From assembly GCA_965112155.1 (NCBI GenBank), contig OZ218099.1: a DNA stretch of 64,000 nt; one strand, 5' to 3'. Shown here piece after piece: positions 27,916 to 61,200 of this stretch. The DNA comes from Podarcis liolepis. Taxonomy: Eukaryota. Numbering within the stretch: the first letter of the stretch is position 1; the number at the start of each line of letters is the position of its first letter. The notes beneath the pieces are model-generated. The model made no database searches. It was not told the DNA's origin and was given only the letters and a program-made list of their open reading frames with translations. The translations under genes and the position numbers were made by a program.

Positions 27916-28067
27916 NNNNNNNNNNNNNNNNNNNNNNNNNNNNNNNNNNNNNNNNNNNNNNNNNNNNNNNNNNNNNNNNNNNNNNNNNNNNNNNNNNNNN
28001 NNNNNNNNNNNNNNNNNNNNNNNNNNNNNNNNNNNNNNNNNNNNNNNNNNNNNNNNNNNNNNNNNNN
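27916..28067. other. Assembly gap (152 N) in STK10 intron 10
   Basis: Run of N; exons 10 and 11 join in frame, so no known exon is missing. Confidence 0.99.
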
Positions 28068-34977: not shown

Positions 34978-35113
34978 CAGTGTTTCCCAACCTTGGGTCT
35001 CCAGCTGTTTTCTGACTACAATTCCCATAATCCCTGACCACTGGTCTGGCTAGCTAGAGATGATGGGAGTTGTAGTCCAAGAACAGCTAAAGACCCAAGA
35101 CTAGGAAACACTG
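34978..35113. mobile_element. Palindromic hAT MITE inserted in a CR1 3' remnant (34932-35220, minus)
   Basis: CAGTGTTTCCCAACCTTGGGTC...GACCCAAGACTAGGAAACACTG hairpin; TSD ATCTAGAT/ATGTAGAC; flanks resume the CR1 tail sequence. Confidence 0.8.
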
Positions 35114-35325
35114 ATGTAGACCAACTCCCAGCAATGCAGGAATCGCAGCTGAAAAATCCCCGACAGATGACAATCCAACCTCTGTTTACAAACCTCCAAT
35201 GAAGAAGAGTCCACCACTTACTTTAGGCCAGCCTTCACCATTTTGGTGCCCTCAAATGTTTTGGACTACAACTGTCATCAACCCAGGCCAGCACAGCCTC
35301 TCTCTCATGCAATTGGTTTGTTTGT

Positions 35326-35371
35326 GTGAGTGAGTGAGTGAGTGAGTGAGTGAGTGAGTGAGTGAGTGAGT
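35326..35371. repeat. (TGAG)n microsatellite
   Basis: Direct reading. Confidence 0.95.
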
Positions 35372-35655
35372 GTGCTTCAATAGGACCAATGTCAAAATAT
35401 TCTTGCCATAGTGTCTGTTGCATTTCCATCAGCTTTTATCTGACTGAGCCCCTGGAGTAAGCCATGGTGAATCTTCATAGAAGTGGCTTTGTTTTCCTTA
35501 AACTAAACCTGCACTATCTTTGTCTGTCCCCTTTGTGGTCTGTTGAATATTACCCTGGGCAAATATCCAATGTCACCATTCGCTTTGACTCTAAACTTGC
35601 AACATTTATTGTATTGACTTACCCCCCCAACCCTGGGCTGCCGTTGCTATTCCAG

Positions 35656-51592: not shown

Positions 51593-53220
51593 CGCGGAGC
51601 TCCGTTTTTTCTCTACCTGTTTTCCCCCTTTAAATTTATGCCGCTTTAAACTGAAACGCTTCTTTTGATGCGTCTAGATCCAGCGTTGGAACCAGTCGTT
51701 GTCCTCTTGTATTGCACAGCAGCTGAGGGAGCTGGCTTATGTTTCGGGGCCATGCTTTTTAATCTCCCAAGGCCCCACGCACCCTCTCCCTACAGATCCC
51801 AACACGATCCCCTACGTGAGTGCACAACGGCGGGTGGGATTGCTGAATCCATCCCTCAAGACCCACCCGTGTAAAGCGTGTAAAGTTGAAGCCTGGGGGG
51901 GGGACAGGAGAGGGGGCGAAGTTTTGCAAGGGGATATTTACTCCATAGGAAAGACTGAGGGAGAGTTGTGGAAAAGCTCAAAGTGCTTTATGCGACGACG
52001 GCTCGAAAGACGACCTTCGGCCTCCCTCGGAAACCAATTGCGCCGCCTCCTGTCGCGACAAGGAGCGTTTCAAAGTGTGGCAATTCCAGATTCAGACGAG
52101 GATTAATTGGTGCCTTTTCCTCTTCTGAGAAAAAGGCGACCCCTGCGTTTGACCTCGGCTGCTTTCGAGCTCTCTTCCTTCACTTCACAAAGAGAGAGAG
52201 AGAGAGAAAGAGAGGCGGGCGAGTTGGGGGGTCAAATGGAGGTTAAAATGGTCCTTGGGATTGTGTGGAAAAGACTCGCTCCTCATATTAATCTAGTCCC
52301 TCTATTTCCCCCTTGCTGTTCTTGGTTATGGGTGACGTGAAAGAAAGGCAAGGATCGTGCGCGGGTTGGTTGTTGTGTTACTGGCAGTGGGCAGGAACGT
52401 GTGGATTTGCCGCCCAACTCCAACTTCCCACCGGTGTTCACAGCTGAAAAGTTGCGCCTTTGCTTCCACACACACACACACACACCCGCCCCCCCAAGCG
52501 CCCCCCCCCCCAATTCTCAGCAGCACAAGCGAAAGGCATGGCGCGGAGAGGCGCTTCTGCGTGTTTGGCCTGAAAGCGCTGGCGAGCCGCACGGTGGTCG
52601 TGGCCCTTTAAGAAGCCCGGGGAGCGGGGCTGGATCAGAGAGCGCCATAACCACACCGCCTGCGCCTGAGTGGGATAGGCTGCTTTGGCAGGGATGGGCT
52701 GGGAGGAGCCCTCCTGCATCTGCAAACTCTGGCCAGGGAAAGAGCGAAGGGGGTAGAGCTGGGGGGGAGGAGGAGGAGGAAGAGGAAGCAGAAGCAAGAA
52801 AGGGGAAAGGGGGCGGGGGGGACACGGGCAGGCGCTGAGGGTGCAGTGGGGCTCAGGCTCGTCTATCCCTTAGCAGCGCAATCTCTGCAACCGCTGCGTT
52901 TAAAAGTTTCTGCGCTTTGGGTCCAGGAGCGTTGGCTGCGCCGACCCTCCCGGAGGAGGGGTTTCTTTCGTCTTATCTTCCCCTCTACCCGTCTCCGAGA
53001 TTTACACTCCTTCCCTCCCCCCTCCCGCTTTATTTTGTTACTTGCTTCTGGGGTTCGGGTTGCAGAGGACCAGCGCTATGCCCCGGAAGAGTATCTTGGA
53101 GGTGAAGGTGCTGGACGTGCAGAAGCGGCGAATTCCCAACAAACACTATGTGAGTGAGCATGGCATGTGTGTTTGTGTGTAAGTGTAACCCGCGGTCGGG
53201 TGGGAAGAATTGCTGAGAGC
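51580..53220 (+). promoter_or_regulatory. CpG-island promoter region of SH3PXD2B
   Basis: High CpG density, GC boxes (GGGGCGGGG near 52809) and G-runs immediately upstream of coding exon 1. Confidence 0.8.
53078..53149 (+). CDS. SH3PXD2B: SH3PXD2B (Tks4) first coding exon, start of PX domain: [24 protein letters not shown]
   Basis: Matches recalled human [25 protein letters not shown], unlike paralog SH3PXD2A (MLAYCVQDATVVDVEKRRNPSKHY); strong phase-0 donor TAT|gtgagt; exon 2 not seen in the window. Confidence 0.93.
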
Positions 53221-55259
53221 GCCTTAAAATCCTCTATCCCAGTGTTTCTCAACCTTGGGTCCCCAGATATTGTGGGAATACAGCCGTTCATTTTCCTCAC
53301 ATGCTGGGACAGATCTGCTGCCCTTGATACAGCTGCTTTGCTGGGATTTCGCACGGGCATCTTCTCCCTGCGTGTTTTTTTTTGGGGGGGGGCGTTGGCT
53401 GCAGCTCCCTAGCTAGAAGAGAGGCGATGGGGTCGCCTCCCCGCAGCCGCTTCTGTGCAGTCTCTTCCATTCCCTCCTGGATCCACTGTGAGTGCATGTT
53501 GTAGCTGGAATAGTCTGTCTGTGCACACACTGCAACTTCCTAGCAAGCCAGGCAGGAAGTTCTTGCCGCCTGGCTCTTTCTTTTCTTTCACCAGCGTTGA
53601 CATTACAAAGGCAGGATTGTGCATGTTGACCAGCCCGTCACTTTAAATCTCTGGCCAGTGCTCTGGACGGGTCCCATCGTGGGATGGGCAAGCATAAGTC
53701 TCCCTTGGCGTTTGCTTTTAATGGTTTGCTTGGAAATTTAAACTGCTGGAGGGGATCTGGAGAGCAGCTGCTCTCCTGGCAGAGAAATCTACATGGGTTT
53801 CTTCTTTCTCAGAAAGGAAAGTAGTGGCTTTCCTGCCAGATTTGTGTTCAGCAGCCTAGAAGTGCATCTGTAGGGTGTGTGAGAAGTTTGCTCAGATTTC
53901 GATATACCCCAGGCAAGAAGACCTCTGGTACTCCCTGCTTTTGGGCCCCCTATGCTTTACAGGCATTGTAAGGCTGTGGGAACCTGGCTGCAATGTGTCA
54001 GAACTGTCAGATTCTGTTTGGAGTGTGTATCCATTGGGGCTGGTGACTGGCAGGTTGGGTGCTGCAGCTTGTCATTTCCACTAAACTGGGGTATGCCTGC
54101 TGAATAGCAAACACCTCCCCTTCTTGCAGGGTCTGTTCTCCCACTTTTAATATCCTGCCTGTTCTGTGCTGAATCCTTAACACAAATATTTCGTGCATTA
54201 TAGATTGCGAGGGAACACAGTCTCTACCCAAAGAGTTGACTGGCAACTCTGTTAAAGAATCTATGGCAATGTTTAATTCATTCACAACACACACATACAC
54301 ACACACACATTAGGAGCCGGAGGGGTGAGACTGTGCAAATAGAGAGAGCAGAGATGGAAGGTTGTGCTTCACATATGGGAACCTGATTGTTTCTGAGAAT
54401 AATGAAAAAGGGAGTTAAGTTAGGAGGCAGCCAGGAGGATGCAGAGGAGAACAAGGAGTGAATGGTAGCATAGGATGAAACATGAGTAGAAAATGCAGGT
54501 CTTTTAATTCCATATCCTCTTATACTGTACAAATTGGTGCAGCAGTCGTTCACTATACCTACCTCTAATGGTGTAATGATCCCCCCCACCCTTTTGTGAT
54601 AAAAAGCTATGATACTGCGATAGTTTTATTTTCATATATTTATACTGTTCTCAGCAACAATTGTCACTAGTATAGGCTTTGTTTTAGAATGTCATAACAA
54701 TCTGACCTTTTATTTTATTGCATTTATATCCCACGTTTCTCCAAAGGAGCTTAAGGTGGTGTACAGGGTTCCCCATTTTTATCACCACAATGTAACTGTG
54801 AGTTAGGCTAGGCAGAGAGAGATGGACTTGGCAGAGGCCACTTACCGGTAATCAGCTACTGAGAAAGAATTTGAACCTGGTCTCTGAGCTCCAACTTTGT
54901 TCTCTCCAGATGTTGTTTGACTCCCAATTCCCATTAGTGCTAGCCAGCACAGCCAGTAGTCAGGAGTGATGGGGATTTACAGTCCAAAAACCTTTGGAGG
55001 GCACCACGTTGGGGAGGGCTGCTCTAACCACTGCACCACAGCGACAATCTGCCAAATTTTCATAGTGGAGAAGGCAACACAAGGAAGCAGGTGGGGAGAG
55101 GAAGATAAACAAAGGAAACAAGTAGTGGGGATGATCTATAGCAGTGTTTCCCAACTGGTGTTCCACGGCACACTAGTGTGCCGCCAGACGTTGCCTGGTG
55201 TGCCGTGGGAGGGAGGTGGGCGAGTCGGGCGGCGAGAGGCGGGGCGGCGGCGGCGAGGA

Positions 55260-55620
55260 GAGGCCGGCCAGCGCGGGGCTCTCGCCGTCTGGCTGCCTGC
55301 GTGGCGCTGACGTCACGGGGCTGTAACGTCGAAAGAAACCCGGGAATCCAGGCTGCGGACAGCCAAACTTCGCCTTTTCTCTATGGCCAGCTTTCATCCT
55401 ATCATATGCTAATACGTCTACGGTTGAAGCTGCGGAAGGGCGGAAGTTCCTGCGGGGAAGAACCGTCCGGTGAGCCCCGCGATCTTGGGAAGCTGAGTTC
55501 CCCCCTCGAGAACCGCCCCTCTCCCGCCACCCTTCTTCTTCTCCGCTGCCCGCGTATGGTCCCGCCGCGTAGCATCCTCTCGGCACCCAGAGCCCGGGGG
55601 GCTTCCTGCTTGCCATGGCG
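55260..55620 (+). promoter_or_regulatory. Housekeeping-type CpG promoter carried inside the hAT element
   Basis: Full CRE TGACGTCA 55308-55315; tandem ETS/GABP CGGAAG at 55433 and 55441; undecayed CpGs. Confidence 0.7.
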
Positions 55621-55808
55621 AGCGGCAGCAGCCTGGCGGCGGTAGCTGGCCTCGCAAAAGCTCCCGCCGCTGGAGGCCCCTTTGCGCCCGCCGGCCGCCT
55701 GTCGGCCGCCTGCTCCTGGGAGTGCCGGGCGGACCTGGCGGGAGTCCTGCGCCTCGTCCCGGAGGGGGAAACCGACGCCTGCGAGCCCCTGGGACCCCCG
55801 CTGAACGG
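55615..55808 (+). pseudogene. Captured first coding exon resembling C10orf88/PAAT exon 1, inside the hAT element
   Basis: Kozak GCCATGG; MASGSSLAAVAGLAKAPAAGGPFAPAGRLSAACSWECRADLAGVLRLVPEGETDACEPLGPPLNG then donor CGG|gtgagg in phase 2; pattern resembles recalled human C10orf88 exon 1 (LASSWDVAGGALTHSLLL...EELLAPPAPG); no later exons seen. Confidence 0.6.
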
Positions 55809-56643
55809 GTGAGGAAGGCGCCCGAGACTGGGGGGGGATACACACGCCCCAGGTTGCGGGCCTTCCTGTTCTCTGGAAGGAGCCCCGGGAGCCGTGGCAA
55901 GGAGGCGAGGGGCAGCCGAGACGGGGCCTCGAGGGGCTTGGCGGGGGGCTGCCCCTCTTCCAGACACCCCCCAACCCCCCAGAATGACCGCCAAATGCTG
56001 AACAAGCATCAAACAACCACAAAGGCTTCCGCGTCGTGACTCAGCGGGCAGAGTGTAGGTGTGTTTTTGCACGAAAAGGATCCCAGGCACATCAGTTCCC
56101 GGCGTCGATCCCTGCCTTGGAAACCTTGGAGAGCTCCTGCCCTCCAAGTGCAGACCCGCCGCTGTCAACTTTTTCCACATTGAACCCAAACACATTGCAC
56201 TTGGGGGACCAGCTTCTTAAATCTTTGGCCATATAGTTTGCACGGTTGCACTTGGCACTGCGACCCAATTTGGATCAATTGGAAGACCAGTGGGTGTAGC
56301 AGCAGCCTGGCAAGAATAGGCTCTTGTCCTCATTCCACTTTTTCAATCCATCCTTCCCCCTCTGGGGTAGCTTTCTTACTTGCTCTAGAACAGTGGTTCC
56401 CAACCTTTTTTTGGGCCATGCCCCACCTAAACATCTCTAAAATCCTGCCCCCCCCCCATGACGTATAATTCTTATTATTCAAAAAGTGAATAAGTAAAAA
56501 GTGACCTTTCCCCATCTGGCATGGTGGTGTGCCTCAAGATTTTTTTCATGAAACAAGTGTGCCTTTGCCCAAAAAAGGTTGGGAAACACTGATCTATAGT
56601 ACAATCCTATGCCAATAAACTCTATTGTGTCCAGTAGAGCTTA

Positions 56644-56999
56644 AAGGTACCAATGCCCGTACGGGCCAGTCGTGTCCGACTCTAGGGTTGTGTGCCCATC
56701 TCACTGAAGAGGCCGGGGGCCAGCGCTGTCCGGAGACACTTCCGGGTCATGTGGCCAGCGTGACGAAGCTGCTCTGGCGAGCCTGCACCAGTGCAGCACA
56801 CGGAAACACCGTTTACCTTCCCGCTAGAAAGCGGTACCTATTTATCTACTTGCACTTTAGGGGTGCTTTCAAACTGCTAGGTGGGCAGGAGCTGGGACCG
56901 CAGACGGGAGCTCACCCCGCCACGGGGATTCGAACCGCCGACCATGTGATCGGCAAGCCGTAGGCGCTGAAGATTTACCCACAGTGCCACCTGCGTTCC
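56644..56999 (-). mobile_element. Sauria SINE (Squam1), near full length
   Basis: 16-bp TSD TGTCCAGTAGAGCTTA (56628-56643, 57000-57015); characteristic TTCCGGGTCATGTGGCCAGC and GTTTACCTTCCCGC body; ACCTTT tail on the minus strand. Confidence 0.88.
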
Positions 57000-57805
57000 T
57001 GTCCAGTAGAGCTTACTCCTTGTTAAATATGTTTAGGATTTCAGCCAAAATTCAGTTGCAGACATATGCTTTAGAACTGGCTGCAGTTGGAGATGAGATT
57101 CTACTTACTTAAACATATTAATTATAATTAATTAATTAGATTTATATACCACCCTTCCTCGCAAGATCTCAAGGCGGTTCACAGAATAAAAATACAAGGC
57201 ATAAACACCAGTAAATAATTAAAACAAAAACAACAAAGCAATACCCCCTTCCACAAACACATTTAAAAGCCTCTTCTACTAGATTGCTGCTGCTTTTTAT
57301 AATGCCTGCTTTTTAAAACACCTTGCTTATAACATGACATTTCCTTGTGTATCTTATTAGACTGGGGGAGAGTTACCGGTAGGACTTGCTTTTACTCTTC
57401 ACTATGGATAATTTCTTTTGTTTTTTAAAACTGAATGCTGCCTTTGCACCAAATGATGCTATAGTGCTGGCCACATGCATCCTTTGAAATACATTCCTGA
57501 GTTGACTGGAATAGGTTTTTTTAATCTTTGGAAGGATCTGCCAGTGACTACAGATAGAGATGCTCTTAGCTGTGTTCTAGTTCTGTCTGGGACATCATAG
57601 TATGGAGGAAATGCATAATCAAAGGGGGGAAAGATGGTAGGCTCTTACACATAAGAGAAAAAGTGAGTCGTTTGGGAAAAGACAATCCTTTAAATCAGAA
57701 GGAAAATCAACAATAAATTGTTGCCTGTAATGAAGGATAGGCGAAGTGAATCAGTTTGGTATAGCTCTTGAGTTCAGATAGACATAAGATTTGATTATCA
57801 TACCC

Positions 57806-58264
57806 CAGAGGTTTTCAGCCTTTTTGAGTCCTCGGCTCCCTTAACCAATTACATTCTGTCTGCGGCACCCCTGTGGGGCTCAAGAGTCCAGTTGTGTCAC
57901 CCCTTGCCTGCAGAGCTGACAGCCTCTCACCCTTTTTTGAACACCCTCCCTTGTGGAGTCTTCCCTCAGCCTCTTCCCTCCCCTTTCCTTGGGAGTCCTT
58001 GGGGCAGCCGTCCCTTGTCTCTGAGCTGACCCCCCCCCTCCGCCCCAAAGAGAGGTGTCTCCCAGAGGCACCCTTCACCTACAGAGCTTATGGCCTGGGC
58101 TGCTGCAACAAACAGCTGTGCAAGCCTTTGGGAGGCAGAGACAAGAGAGGGCATCAGAGCAGGGAGGGAAGGAAAGAGGGATGGAGGCCAGTGTTGCCCA
58201 CGGCACCCCTGACCATCATTCAAGGCACCCCAGGGTGCCACAGCACACTGGTTGAAAAACACTG
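57806..58264. mobile_element. hAT MITE
   Basis: Perfect 8-bp TSD TCATACCC (57798-57805, 58265-58272); TIRs CAGAGGTTTTCAGCC / GGTTGAAAAACACTG; GGCACCC subterminal repeats. Confidence 0.85.
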
Positions 58265-61200
58265 TCATACCCTAACGACCTGTTGTTGTTTAAATGAGGC
58301 AGTCCTGCTTTCTAGCTGACTGTAGGGTTGGGCGGTTGTTTGTATCTTGGTCAATTCAAATGCCATGGTTGCTACTGCAGAAACCAGCTCTGTAATTTGC
58401 ACTCCCTCCTTCCTTTGAGTAGATTAATTCCTTGGTCCCCTTTCCCAGCTCGGAAAGTTTTGGAGGTGGAGGAGGAAAAGGGGCTTGTACCCAACCTCCC
58501 AGTAAGATGCGGTGTGAGGTCTGGAACTTGTGTTGCAATCCCTTATGGGAGTAAGCACCAGTGAGCACAATGGGACTCCTGTGCGAAAATGCACCGGATT
58601 GTTCTTAAGGGTAAGGTCCTGACAACCAATCTTCGCTTGACTACCAAGGCCCAAACCAAATTTGTGGGTCTCCACTGAGTGCATTTGCATACATCTTACT
58701 TGTGCAACCTTCATACTGGGATTGTGTGTTATGAAGAATCCACTTGCACACAAACTGCCCTCTTGGATCAGACCGAAATATCCATCTAGTCAAGCATTTG
58801 GTTTCCATCTGCTCACCAGATGCCTCAGCGTGGTTAATTGTGATTTTGGATTTTAGAAGCAAATATTCAGATGGGAAATACACTTCATGCTAGCCAATGT
58901 GTGTTCTCAAACAACACTTGTGATGGGAAAATTGGGGTGGGAATAGGAATTCTTCCCTGTAAATTTCTTCCTCACTTTTTTTTTAATTATAAAAAAATCT
59001 TAATCAGTGTTGATTCCAATTGGGCAGCACTGCTGGGGGGGCAATGTACTAAAAGGGGGGGGGGGAGAGAGAGAGAACCATTTGCAGAGGAGAACTGATG
59101 AACACGGAAAGGGTTAAGCATCTTTCTGTGCTGGTTCTCACCTGCAAATACCCCCCCCCCTTATTAGTATTATAAGGCAAATAAGGATAATAATGATATG
59201 GTGGCTCTAGAGCCTATATTTATTTTATAGCATGTAGATCTGTCCAAAGATTTCTGCTGGCCATATATATCCAATGAGTTCCTTCAGACAAGTTCAGCTC
59301 TTTGACTGCATACCTGGGACTGTTTGCACGAGCAAGAATATATTGTGTGAACTAGGTCTGAGGCTCATTGTTATTTACACAGATATTTTTTTTCTGTCTT
59401 GCCCTTCCTCCAGTTATTTATGATGGAAAAAATACTGACTTCTCCCTTTTGGAGTAGCATGAAAATGGTTGGTGATGTTATAATTCCTCTTCAAATTACA
59501 GTACTACTCTAAGTGAAGGATTAAAGGCTGCCTTCCCTCTTGGCAAATGTGAGCCTTCCACTTCTTCCAGCAATGGAAAATATCCACCACAAATATGTTT
59601 GCTCTCATTTGATTCCTTAGATGATTCTTTAACAGTTAAAAGTTTTTAGCCCTTGAAAAGAGAATGAACTTGTGATTCTGTAATTCAGCTCTGACAACCT
59701 TTGCAGGAATATCTTGTGTTGTGGTTGATTTGAAATTGGCTGCTGCTGACCTTTACACACCAAGACTAGACCTTTGTTCTTTATCTTCTACCTGAGCTAG
59801 GAATCTTTCACCCTATTTTTAAATGTTCTCATATGCTTTCCCCTCGTCCCAGTGGATGAAAATACAGGATGAGACTTCCTTTGGAATCCATAGTTTTTCA
59901 GCTTGCCATGTATTTCCATCTTTTGAAGGGCAGGTGTGAAAATAAAGGACAATTTTAGGAGTCTTCTTTTGTCTCTGGAATCCTATGGTGTTTTGTTTCT
60001 GAGAAACCTTCACACCCACCCCACACACATTTAAATTGATGTGATTATACCATCTACCTGCAGATAGAAGACATCTCCAAACATATTCTTATCTAAGAGG
60101 CTTTGTGAATTAAGAGGTCACCTGCAATGAGATCTTCCTACTTTGGTACATGCACTGTTTCTTCAGTGGTGACATTCCAGTGATTCCAGAGCACAAGTAC
60201 CCCACTCCAACAATAGTTGTGGAAAAATAATTAGAATTGTTCAGAGAAAGCTTGGAATGGGAAAGAATCGCAAGGCCATTCTCCCCCCCCCCCATTTGAT
60301 CATGGACAGTTGTACATGCATACAGTGACCACATGAAGAATGGTAGACCAGTTTGTACACATAGGCAGCCTGCAACCATCTCTGTGCCCAGGTGCTAAAA
60401 AAGTACAGTTGGACAATGTAGTTGCACTAAACTTTCAGCCATGAAGCTCACCGTGTGGCCATTGCCAGGCACACTGTCTCTCAGCCTAAACTACCACACT
60501 GGGGAGTTGCTTGGCTAAAAAGTGGACAAATGTTGTAAGCTGCTGCCTTCAATTCGTTGGAGGAATAAATGTATTTTGAAGTAAATCATGTTTCTGTTTC
60601 TGAAACCCTGTGAACTAGATTAACGTTGAAGTGAAAGAGAACAGTGTTTGCCCTTGAATCTGTACATAAGAACAAGACAGATTCCCAAAGACAGTTAATT
60701 ATATACACTCCAAACCTATTTTTACACAATAAGTGGAGAGGCTGAGTCATCTTGCTGTTGGCTACCTATAAGGCTCTTTCTGTGAGGTTGGAGCCAACCG
60801 TAAATAGGCCTGTTAGGCCTTCTCAACTACTTTGAGCACAGACCTGCCTTTCTCTTCCCTGAAGGCAGTTTCTTAGTATTCATGAGTTTGGAAAACTCCC
60901 TACTTTCAGAGTGTCATAGTCTGACCTAGAAATGACCTGTGCATTTCCCCACCCCCAGACAGACAGACAGACAGACAGTTGCACTTAACTATGGAAAGTT
61001 GTATTTTCAGCTGTGGGGCAATAATGGGGAGACTGGATCTCTGAGAAAAGGCTGAGGAAAGTGTGGCCTTGAGTAACTTTTGGTGCTCATTTATTGAGTG
61101 CTTGGAAGATCTGATGTTTGAGAATCTGCTTCTGTCCTCATTTATCTCTGTGGCGGCTGTAACAGAGAGCAGAGTTGCATGTAACTTTTGTTTCTTCCTC

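Follow-up and report, generated by a model that had tools for sequence, protein, structure and literature searches.

The stretch of contig OZ218099.1 from the lizard Podarcis liolepis (GCA_965112155.1) analyzed here spans 64,000 nucleotides (nt) and is hereafter called the window, to which all positions refer. It includes the first coding exon of a gene that we take to be SH3PXD2B and, 2 kb downstream of that exon and in the same orientation, a 1,450-bp unit (55142-56591) with hAT termini at both ends. Enclosed between these termini are a CpG island, the first coding exon of a different gene, PAAT (C10orf88), and an intron-like segment. We consider it likely that this unit is a non-autonomous, transposase-less hAT DNA transposon with the 5' part of PAAT as its cargo, i.e. 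a representative of the Pack-TIR or, more narrowly, the Pack-hAT kind: the ends of a transposon with terminal inverted repeats (TIRs) enclose a non-transposon segment, namely PAAT exon 1, with no transposase.

The unit and its hAT termini

The two outer ends of the unit are formed by perfect 14-bp TIRs, with CAGTGTTTCCCAAC at 55142-55155 on the plus strand and its exact reverse complement at 56578-56591 (14/14 positions). Both are directly adjoined by copies of an 8-bp target-site duplication (TSD), ATCTATAG, which are identical at all eight positions, a match with a chance probability of ~1.5e-5 at fixed positions. The identity extends to 10 bp, TGATCTATAG (55132-55141 = 56590-56599), and the octamer fits the nTnnnnAn preference of hAT elements, its second base being T and its seventh A. 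Allowing up to two mismatches, the TIR motif has eight matches in the window against 0.92 expected, a count reached in none of 100 shuffles; it thus marks the ends of copies of a repeat family resident here. Further, 5 of the 16 occurrences of GTGTGCC or its complement GGCACAC in the window fall within the terminal 68 and 65 bp of the unit, where ~0.03 would be expected; in the left end, one such pair makes a perfect 18-nt palindrome (55166-55183). The short CAG-type TIRs, short subterminal repeats and 8-bp TSD that define hAT membership are hence all present.

No transposase is encoded in the unit. The open reading frames (ORFs) of at least 180 residues that overlap it are three in number and all antisense; the longest (340 residues, 55173-56195) was scanned against Pfam and contains no domain, and the remaining two are nested within its span in different antisense frames. 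All three are read-throughs of GC-rich sequence, and the 340-residue ORF was rejected as a gene of its own on this ground and for its lack of a Pfam match. ORFs of at least 180 residues elsewhere in the window show no transposase domain either. Likewise, no RNA family was detected with Rfam in the region 54000-58500.

In addition to the outer ends, we found a third hAT terminus, CAGTGGTTCCCAACCTTTTTTTGGG, at position 56391. This terminus pairs with the right end of the unit via 32-nt arms that are 88% complementary, and the two delimit a complete 201-bp miniature inverted-repeat transposable element (MITE), whose outer TIR (56578-56591) is at once the right terminus of the entire 1,450 bp. The outer ends of the unit are accordingly unlike in type, with an A-type end on the left and an end of the CCTTTTTTGGG type (B) on the right. 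Directly before the internal TIR is a target-site-like octamer, CTCTAGAA, with a TCTAGA-type core like that of the TSD of the unit, ATCTATAG, and of the TSD ATCTAGAT of a separate MITE at 34978. This suggests that CTCTAGAA may be half of a TSD carried along from the donor locus, and that 56390/56391 may be a true integration junction, made by transposase and moved along with the cargo. Read in this manner, the junction would place the MITE in intron 1 of PAAT. The junction at the other side of the cargo is of a different character. The left end of the unit (55142-55209) is ~70% alike to one end of an independent element at 57806-58264, and the alignment halts at a shared GTGCCGTGGG (55200-55209), which by this comparison marks the point where transposon sequence stops. 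At ~55209/55210, between left end and cargo, there is neither a TIR nor a TSD signature, and it is by its anatomy a repair-type junction.

An earlier prediction made from the nucleotides alone (hereafter the original prediction) had described the 1,450-bp unit with its perfect 14-bp TIRs, perfect 8-bp TSD and GTGTGCC subterminal repeats, all of which we find at the positions it gave, as well as a non-transposase interior, with which the lack of a Pfam transposase domain agrees. Its frame and cargo are thus borne out, whereas the simple two-ended structure that it envisaged is incomplete, given the complete MITE inside the right end.

The PAAT cargo

The cargo between the hAT ends amounts to ~1.18 kb. 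Its central part is an ORF of 65 codons (55615-55809), with a TGA stop formed by the splice donor itself (CGG/GTGAGG, with the boundary at 55808/55809 and the GT at 55809-55810). A HMMER search with this ORF recovered a 148-residue protein with 95% identity across residues 1-65, named 'Chromosome 10 open reading frame 88' from Podarcis lilfordi, and a 496-residue protein that is 58% identical, named 'C10orf88 homolog' from Pogona vitticeps. Both of these carry the Pfam PAAT-like domain (PF14958), which begins four residues past the shared part, at residue 69 in the P. lilfordi protein. The ORF itself matches no Pfam family, as the PAAT-like domain is encoded from exon 2 onward. Within lacertids, the ORF is 98% identical to residues 1-65 of the P. 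muralis ATPase PAAT XP_028585866.2 (64/65, with A53T as the sole difference), 97% to PAAT of P. raffonei, 95% to that of P. lilfordi, 92% to that of Zootoca and 91% to that of Lacerta. The exon stands at the head of the PAAT protein in five lacertid annotations, of which four full-length 456-residue models continue with the remainder of PAAT. The same ...NG* terminates an unrelated Logan ORF from another species, as expected from a conserved exon-1 boundary. Sequence comparison therefore confirms the cargo exon as the 5' coding end of PAAT/C10orf88.

The region upstream of this exon resembles a 5' regulatory region. It contains a cAMP response element (CRE), TGACGTCA, at 55308-55315 and two CGGAAG ETS cores at 55433-55446, and the start codon at 55615 is in the context gccATGg; the left limit of this part is uncertain and lies between 55210 and ~55300. 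Downstream of the exon, the intron-like part shows no protein similarity and no repeat of it was found elsewhere in the window. Across the cargo, the observed/expected (o/e) ratio of CpG declines from the upstream region through the exon and the two parts of the intron-like segment to the terminal MITE (Table 1), and this profile resembles a native 5' CpG island fading into its intron. The cargo is a true CpG island (0.85-0.96, against 0.20 in the left flank), its upstream part is a putative promoter, and the intron-like segment would correspond to intron 1 of PAAT.

The similarity to PAAT ends at the exon-1 donor and is followed by non-coding sequence; the cargo was therefore captured at the DNA level and is not a retrocopy. 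Consistent with this, a tblastn search of both strands of the window with three PAAT proteins found exon 1 only. The 55 kb on the upstream side of the unit and the 7.4 kb on its downstream side hold neither a PAAT exon nor a copy of the cargo, which is thus single in the window. On the basis of its sequence, the fragment is an isolated 5' piece of PAAT captured as genomic DNA. A processed PAAT retrocopy was rejected, since the similarity breaks off with residue 65 at a GT donor, the sequence beyond runs into a stop instead of encoding the following 31 PAAT residues, and there is no poly(A); a functional or full PAAT duplicate was rejected too, with exon 1 alone in the 64 kb and no PF14958. The original prediction had likened the peptide to C10orf88/PAAT exon 1 and had proposed DNA-level capture; the first is upheld by the 64/65 identity to P. 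muralis PAAT and by the alignment of the 65-residue peptide to lacertid PAAT proteins (91-98%), and the second by the end of similarity at the GT donor with intron-like sequence retained. The cargo features that it had listed (CpG island, CRE, tandem ETS sites, Kozak ATG at 55615, 194-nt exon, donor and intron-like part) are likewise present.

As for the age of the capture, the ORF is of the Podarcis type (64/65 identity to P. muralis as against 91-92% to Lacerta and Zootoca), and capture was therefore later than the split from Lacerta and Zootoca. The unit may be young, as the original prediction held, to judge from this 64/65 identity, from TIRs and a TSD that are still intact and from the CpGs that it has kept. 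The retained CpGs could alternatively reflect germ-line hypomethylation of an active CpG island.

Table 1. Positions of the unit, its parts and the upstream host exon in the window, with CpG o/e where calculated
Feature	Positions	Strand	Basis	CpG o/e
Host gene first coding exon, 24 residues, followed by GTGAGT, phase 0	53078-53149	+	open reading frame and donor	
Left flank of the unit				0.20
Left TSD copy, ATCTATAG	55134-55141	.	repeat comparison	
hAT left end, 'A-type': 14-bp TIR, GGCACAC/GTGTGCC subterminal repeats, palindrome	55142-55209	+		
Cargo part 1: CpG-island upstream region and presumed PAAT 5' untranslated region, GC 0.66	55210-55614	+		0.96
Cargo part 2: PAAT (C10orf88) coding exon 1, 194 nt, phase 2	55615-55808	+	protein homology	0.85
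Cargo part 3: intron-1-like sequence opening with donor GTGAGG, ~575-580 bp	55809-56382	+		0.59 (first part), 0.37 (second part)
Target-site-like octamer directly before the internal TIR, CTCTAGAA	56383-56390	.		
Complete 201-bp hAT MITE, 'B-type' ends in inverted orientation	56391-56591	+		0.11
Internal TIR, CAGTGGTTCCCAAC	56391-56404		inverted-repeat search	
Right TSD copy, ATCTATAG	56592-56599	.	repeat comparison	

Proposed route of capture

Judging by the junction anatomy, a MITE resident in intron 1 probably accompanied the cargo out of the PAAT locus, by way of ectopic gap repair or the use of alternative ends. In the sequence of events that we propose, a small hAT MITE would have inserted ~580 bp into intron 1 of PAAT at the donor locus, with the resulting junction, CTCTAGAA/CAGTGG..., being kept at 56390/56391. 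After breakage or excision, a related hAT element would then have taken this MITE as an ectopic repair template. Synthesis would have left the MITE at its left end, copied intron 1, exon 1 and the promoter in turn, and finished with a non-transposase join at ~55209/55210 to the other, A-type end. The outcome would be a chimera with two working outer ends, which could either have arisen at the present site or, more likely, have been cut and pasted into the host intron, thereby making the ATCTATAG duplication. Since cases of in-situ origin show a strong cis bias, the absence of a parent copy from the window argues mildly for arrival by cut-and-paste transposition. The ectopic-template route matches the gap filling described for animal Pack-TIRs, which is guided by (micro)homology and involves template switching, with breakpoints to match (PMC8277862).

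The window also contains a solo hAT terminus, CAGTGTTTCTCAACCTTGGGTCCCCAG, at 53240-53270, ~90 bp downstream of the donor of the host exon 1; it exemplifies a hAT end beside a CpG-island first exon, the configuration that the capture model requires. hAT elements favor promoter-proximal open chromatin, so that the flank of a MITE would often be a CpG island, and this preference would account for the cargo being the 5' end of a gene. Going further, we raise as a tentative and rather doubtful proposal that a recently or currently active lacertid hAT family functions as a recurrent system for the capture of CpG-island promoters, in which MITEs near promoters, via ectopic gap repair or alternative ends, give rise to mobile and maybe multicopy chimeras. 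Were this the case, ready-made housekeeping promoters with splice donors would be scattered through the introns of other genes, with the PAAT element being one of them, and a 'fossil' internal hAT end with half a TSD would be expected next to every cargo.

Several points weigh against this reconstruction. The MITE in intron 1 of PAAT is a prediction derived from the unit's own sequence, and the limits between transposon and cargo were set by a single comparison, at ~70%, to an element that has diverged. The parental PAAT locus is seen as protein only, with the promoter and intron parts being assigned to PAAT by inference. Further, the TSD is equally compatible with transposition of the whole unit, as in the original prediction, and with the filling of a resident element in situ. 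The latter forms the core of an alternative that we regard as unlikely, in which a cargo-less hAT element with the ATCTATAG TSD had long been resident at the site, was repaired after a later break from the PAAT 5' region and a homologous MITE, and has never moved as a chimera. In its favor, the left junction at 55209/55210 was not made by a transposase, and the structure is accounted for just as well if synthesis returned by way of the homology that the resident right end shares with the PAAT-intron MITE; moreover, in-situ filling is the majority route for single-copy animal Pack-TIRs (PMC8277862). However, the same route has a strong cis bias, with 57% of parents lying within 15 kb (PMC8277862), as against none here within the 55 kb upstream and 7.4 kb downstream, and perfect TIRs and TSD are unexpected for an old resident element, though 14 and 8 bp give this argument little power.

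The departure from the PAAT locus might instead have involved two hAT insertions flanking the PAAT promoter and exon 1, with the transposase using the outer left and outer right ends and moving all that lay between. Linked Ac/Ds elements of maize move as such macrotransposons, and the complete MITE with its own left TIR inside the right end of the unit, as well as the difference between the outer ends (A versus B), which is also seen in the independent element at 57806-58264, would suit this scenario. Yet the left element would then be a bare 68-bp end with no matching inner right TIR after it, and 55209/55210 lacks a TIR or TSD signature; chiefly because of this bare end, we see a macrotransposon as a weaker alternative than the ectopic-template route, and as quite improbable in its own right. 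The unit might also be one copy of an amplified family, as the original prediction had suggested, in which a single capture of the PAAT fragment was followed by the spread of the ~1.4-kb chimera, making the cargo the standard interior of a lacertid hAT-N family. This is possible, albeit with more doubt than confidence on our part: no second copy accompanies the unit in the window, the PAAT cluster is the only one among annotated proteins of 251-798 residues to start with this exon (with P. muralis residues 1-65 as query; a weak negative), and no relatives of the 65-residue ORF were found among proteins of 36-114 residues (again a weak negative). Finally, the CpG island and exon might be native, whether they mark the true start of PAAT or provide an alternative first exon, with two unrelated MITEs lying on either side by chance in a region that is indeed rich in MITEs and short interspersed elements (SINEs), or the arrangement might be an assembly artefact. 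That no capture took place is very improbable in the face of the identical 8-bp (10-bp) duplication exactly at both outer TIRs, the lack of any further PAAT exon in the window, the position of the exon at the head of PAAT in the five lacertid annotations and the host exon 1 lying 2 kb upstream, which makes the site intron 1 of another gene.

Related systems and genomic setting

Pack-type transposons are well established in plants, whereas in animals they are mostly short, single-copy and largely inert fillers. A survey of 100 animal genomes reported 370 Pack-TIRs, of which 208 have hAT ends, the commonest superfamily, and almost all are single-copy (Tan et al. 2021, Nat Commun 12:4280, PMC8277862). 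Among them is Pack-hAT-N8_XT of Xenopus tropicalis, which carries 291 bp of the 5' untranslated region of CAPSL (PMC8277862). The unit described here is like the animal Pack-hATs in being non-autonomous, in its 8-bp TSD and in an interior taken from a host gene at the DNA level, with the frog example also carrying a 5' part of a gene. It differs from them in its larger and functional-looking cargo module, comprising a whole CpG island, start codon, exon 1, donor and part of an intron, in the internal complete MITE with its putative carried-along integration junction on the donor side, and in its squamate host. The only lizard in that survey, Anolis (anoCar2), has no Pack-TIRs (PMC8277862), leaving the squamates effectively blank in the sole metazoan survey, and our literature searches found no reports of squamate Pack-TIRs. 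The unit is accordingly a new and unusually complete example of an already described kind. As such, it offers a clean vertebrate case of a whole 5' gene module between intact hAT ends, placed in sense orientation in the first intron of another gene, and its internal MITE junction is an unusually explicit and testable trace of a capture route.

With the Pack-MULEs of rice and maize, the unit shares the combination of a transposase-less TIR element and a host gene fragment. Pack-MULEs are also said to be biased toward the GC-rich 5' ends of genes. They are, in contrast, Mutator elements with 9-10-bp TSDs and long TIRs, often combine pieces of several genes and in many cases occur in multiple copies (36% of those in rice; PMC8277862). 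A vertebrate DNA transposon that carries a host promoter and first exon is also reminiscent of the Helitrons of vespertilionid bats. The latter have reportedly spread host promoters together with first exons; unlike the cut-and-paste hAT unit, they are rolling-circle elements without TIRs or TSD that capture by bypass of their end. The Ds-type internal-deletion and filler-DNA derivatives and the macrotransposons of maize Ac/Ds belong to the same superfamily. Classically, hAT elements acquire foreign DNA by two routes, through abortive gap repair with ectopic filler DNA or by transposition with one end taken from each of two linked elements. Those routes are known from plant genetic experiments, whereas that of the lizard unit is proposed from junction anatomy.

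With respect to its setting, the unit is predicted to supply intron 1 of the SH3PXD2B-like gene with a splice donor and an ectopic, sense-oriented putative CpG-island promoter. Should this promoter fire, the unit would directly exemplify how a cut-and-paste transposon shuffles promoters in an amniote. The cargo exon ends in phase 2 and the host intron 1 is in phase 0, so splicing to the host exon 2 would be out of frame; on this ground, an in-frame PAAT-SH3PXD2B fusion was rejected (194-nt phase-2 exon versus phase-0 host intron). An annotated chimeric protein starting with PAAT exon 1 was not seen among candidates of 251-798 residues, which is a weak negative. The host gene has a CpG island of its own together with its first coding exon (52400-53200, ATG at 53078), with a GC content of 0.60 and a CpG o/e of 0.63, below that of the imported PAAT island (0.85-0.96). 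A PDB search with the peptide of the host exon 1 gave no match, and a motif scan of the window for the host exon 2 returned nothing convincing.

Several other repeats occur in the window. A second intact non-autonomous hAT element, of 459 bp (57806-58264), has a perfect 8-bp TSD, TCATACCC, and is oriented opposite to the main unit. The end that resembles the left end of the unit (~70%) is at 58264-58197, and between its ends lies GC-rich but CpG-poor DNA (CpG o/e 0.13), different from the interior of the unit and possibly an older cargo. A 136-bp MITE at 34978-35113 has the same 14-bp terminus, CAGTGTTTCCCAAC, with a different interior (...ACTACAATTCCCAT...); its imperfect TSD, ATCTAGAT/ATGTAGAC, shows that the target core of the family is TCTAGA-like. 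Directly to the right of the unit, at 56640-56990, is a tRNA-derived, SINE-like repeat (...GGGATTCGAACCGCCGACC...) in reverse orientation, which seems to resemble the Squam1/Sauria SINEs of squamates. Elsewhere, there are a 152-nt run of N (27916-28067), representing a gap or masked sequence, and a (GTGA)n microsatellite of ~50 bp at 35322-35372.

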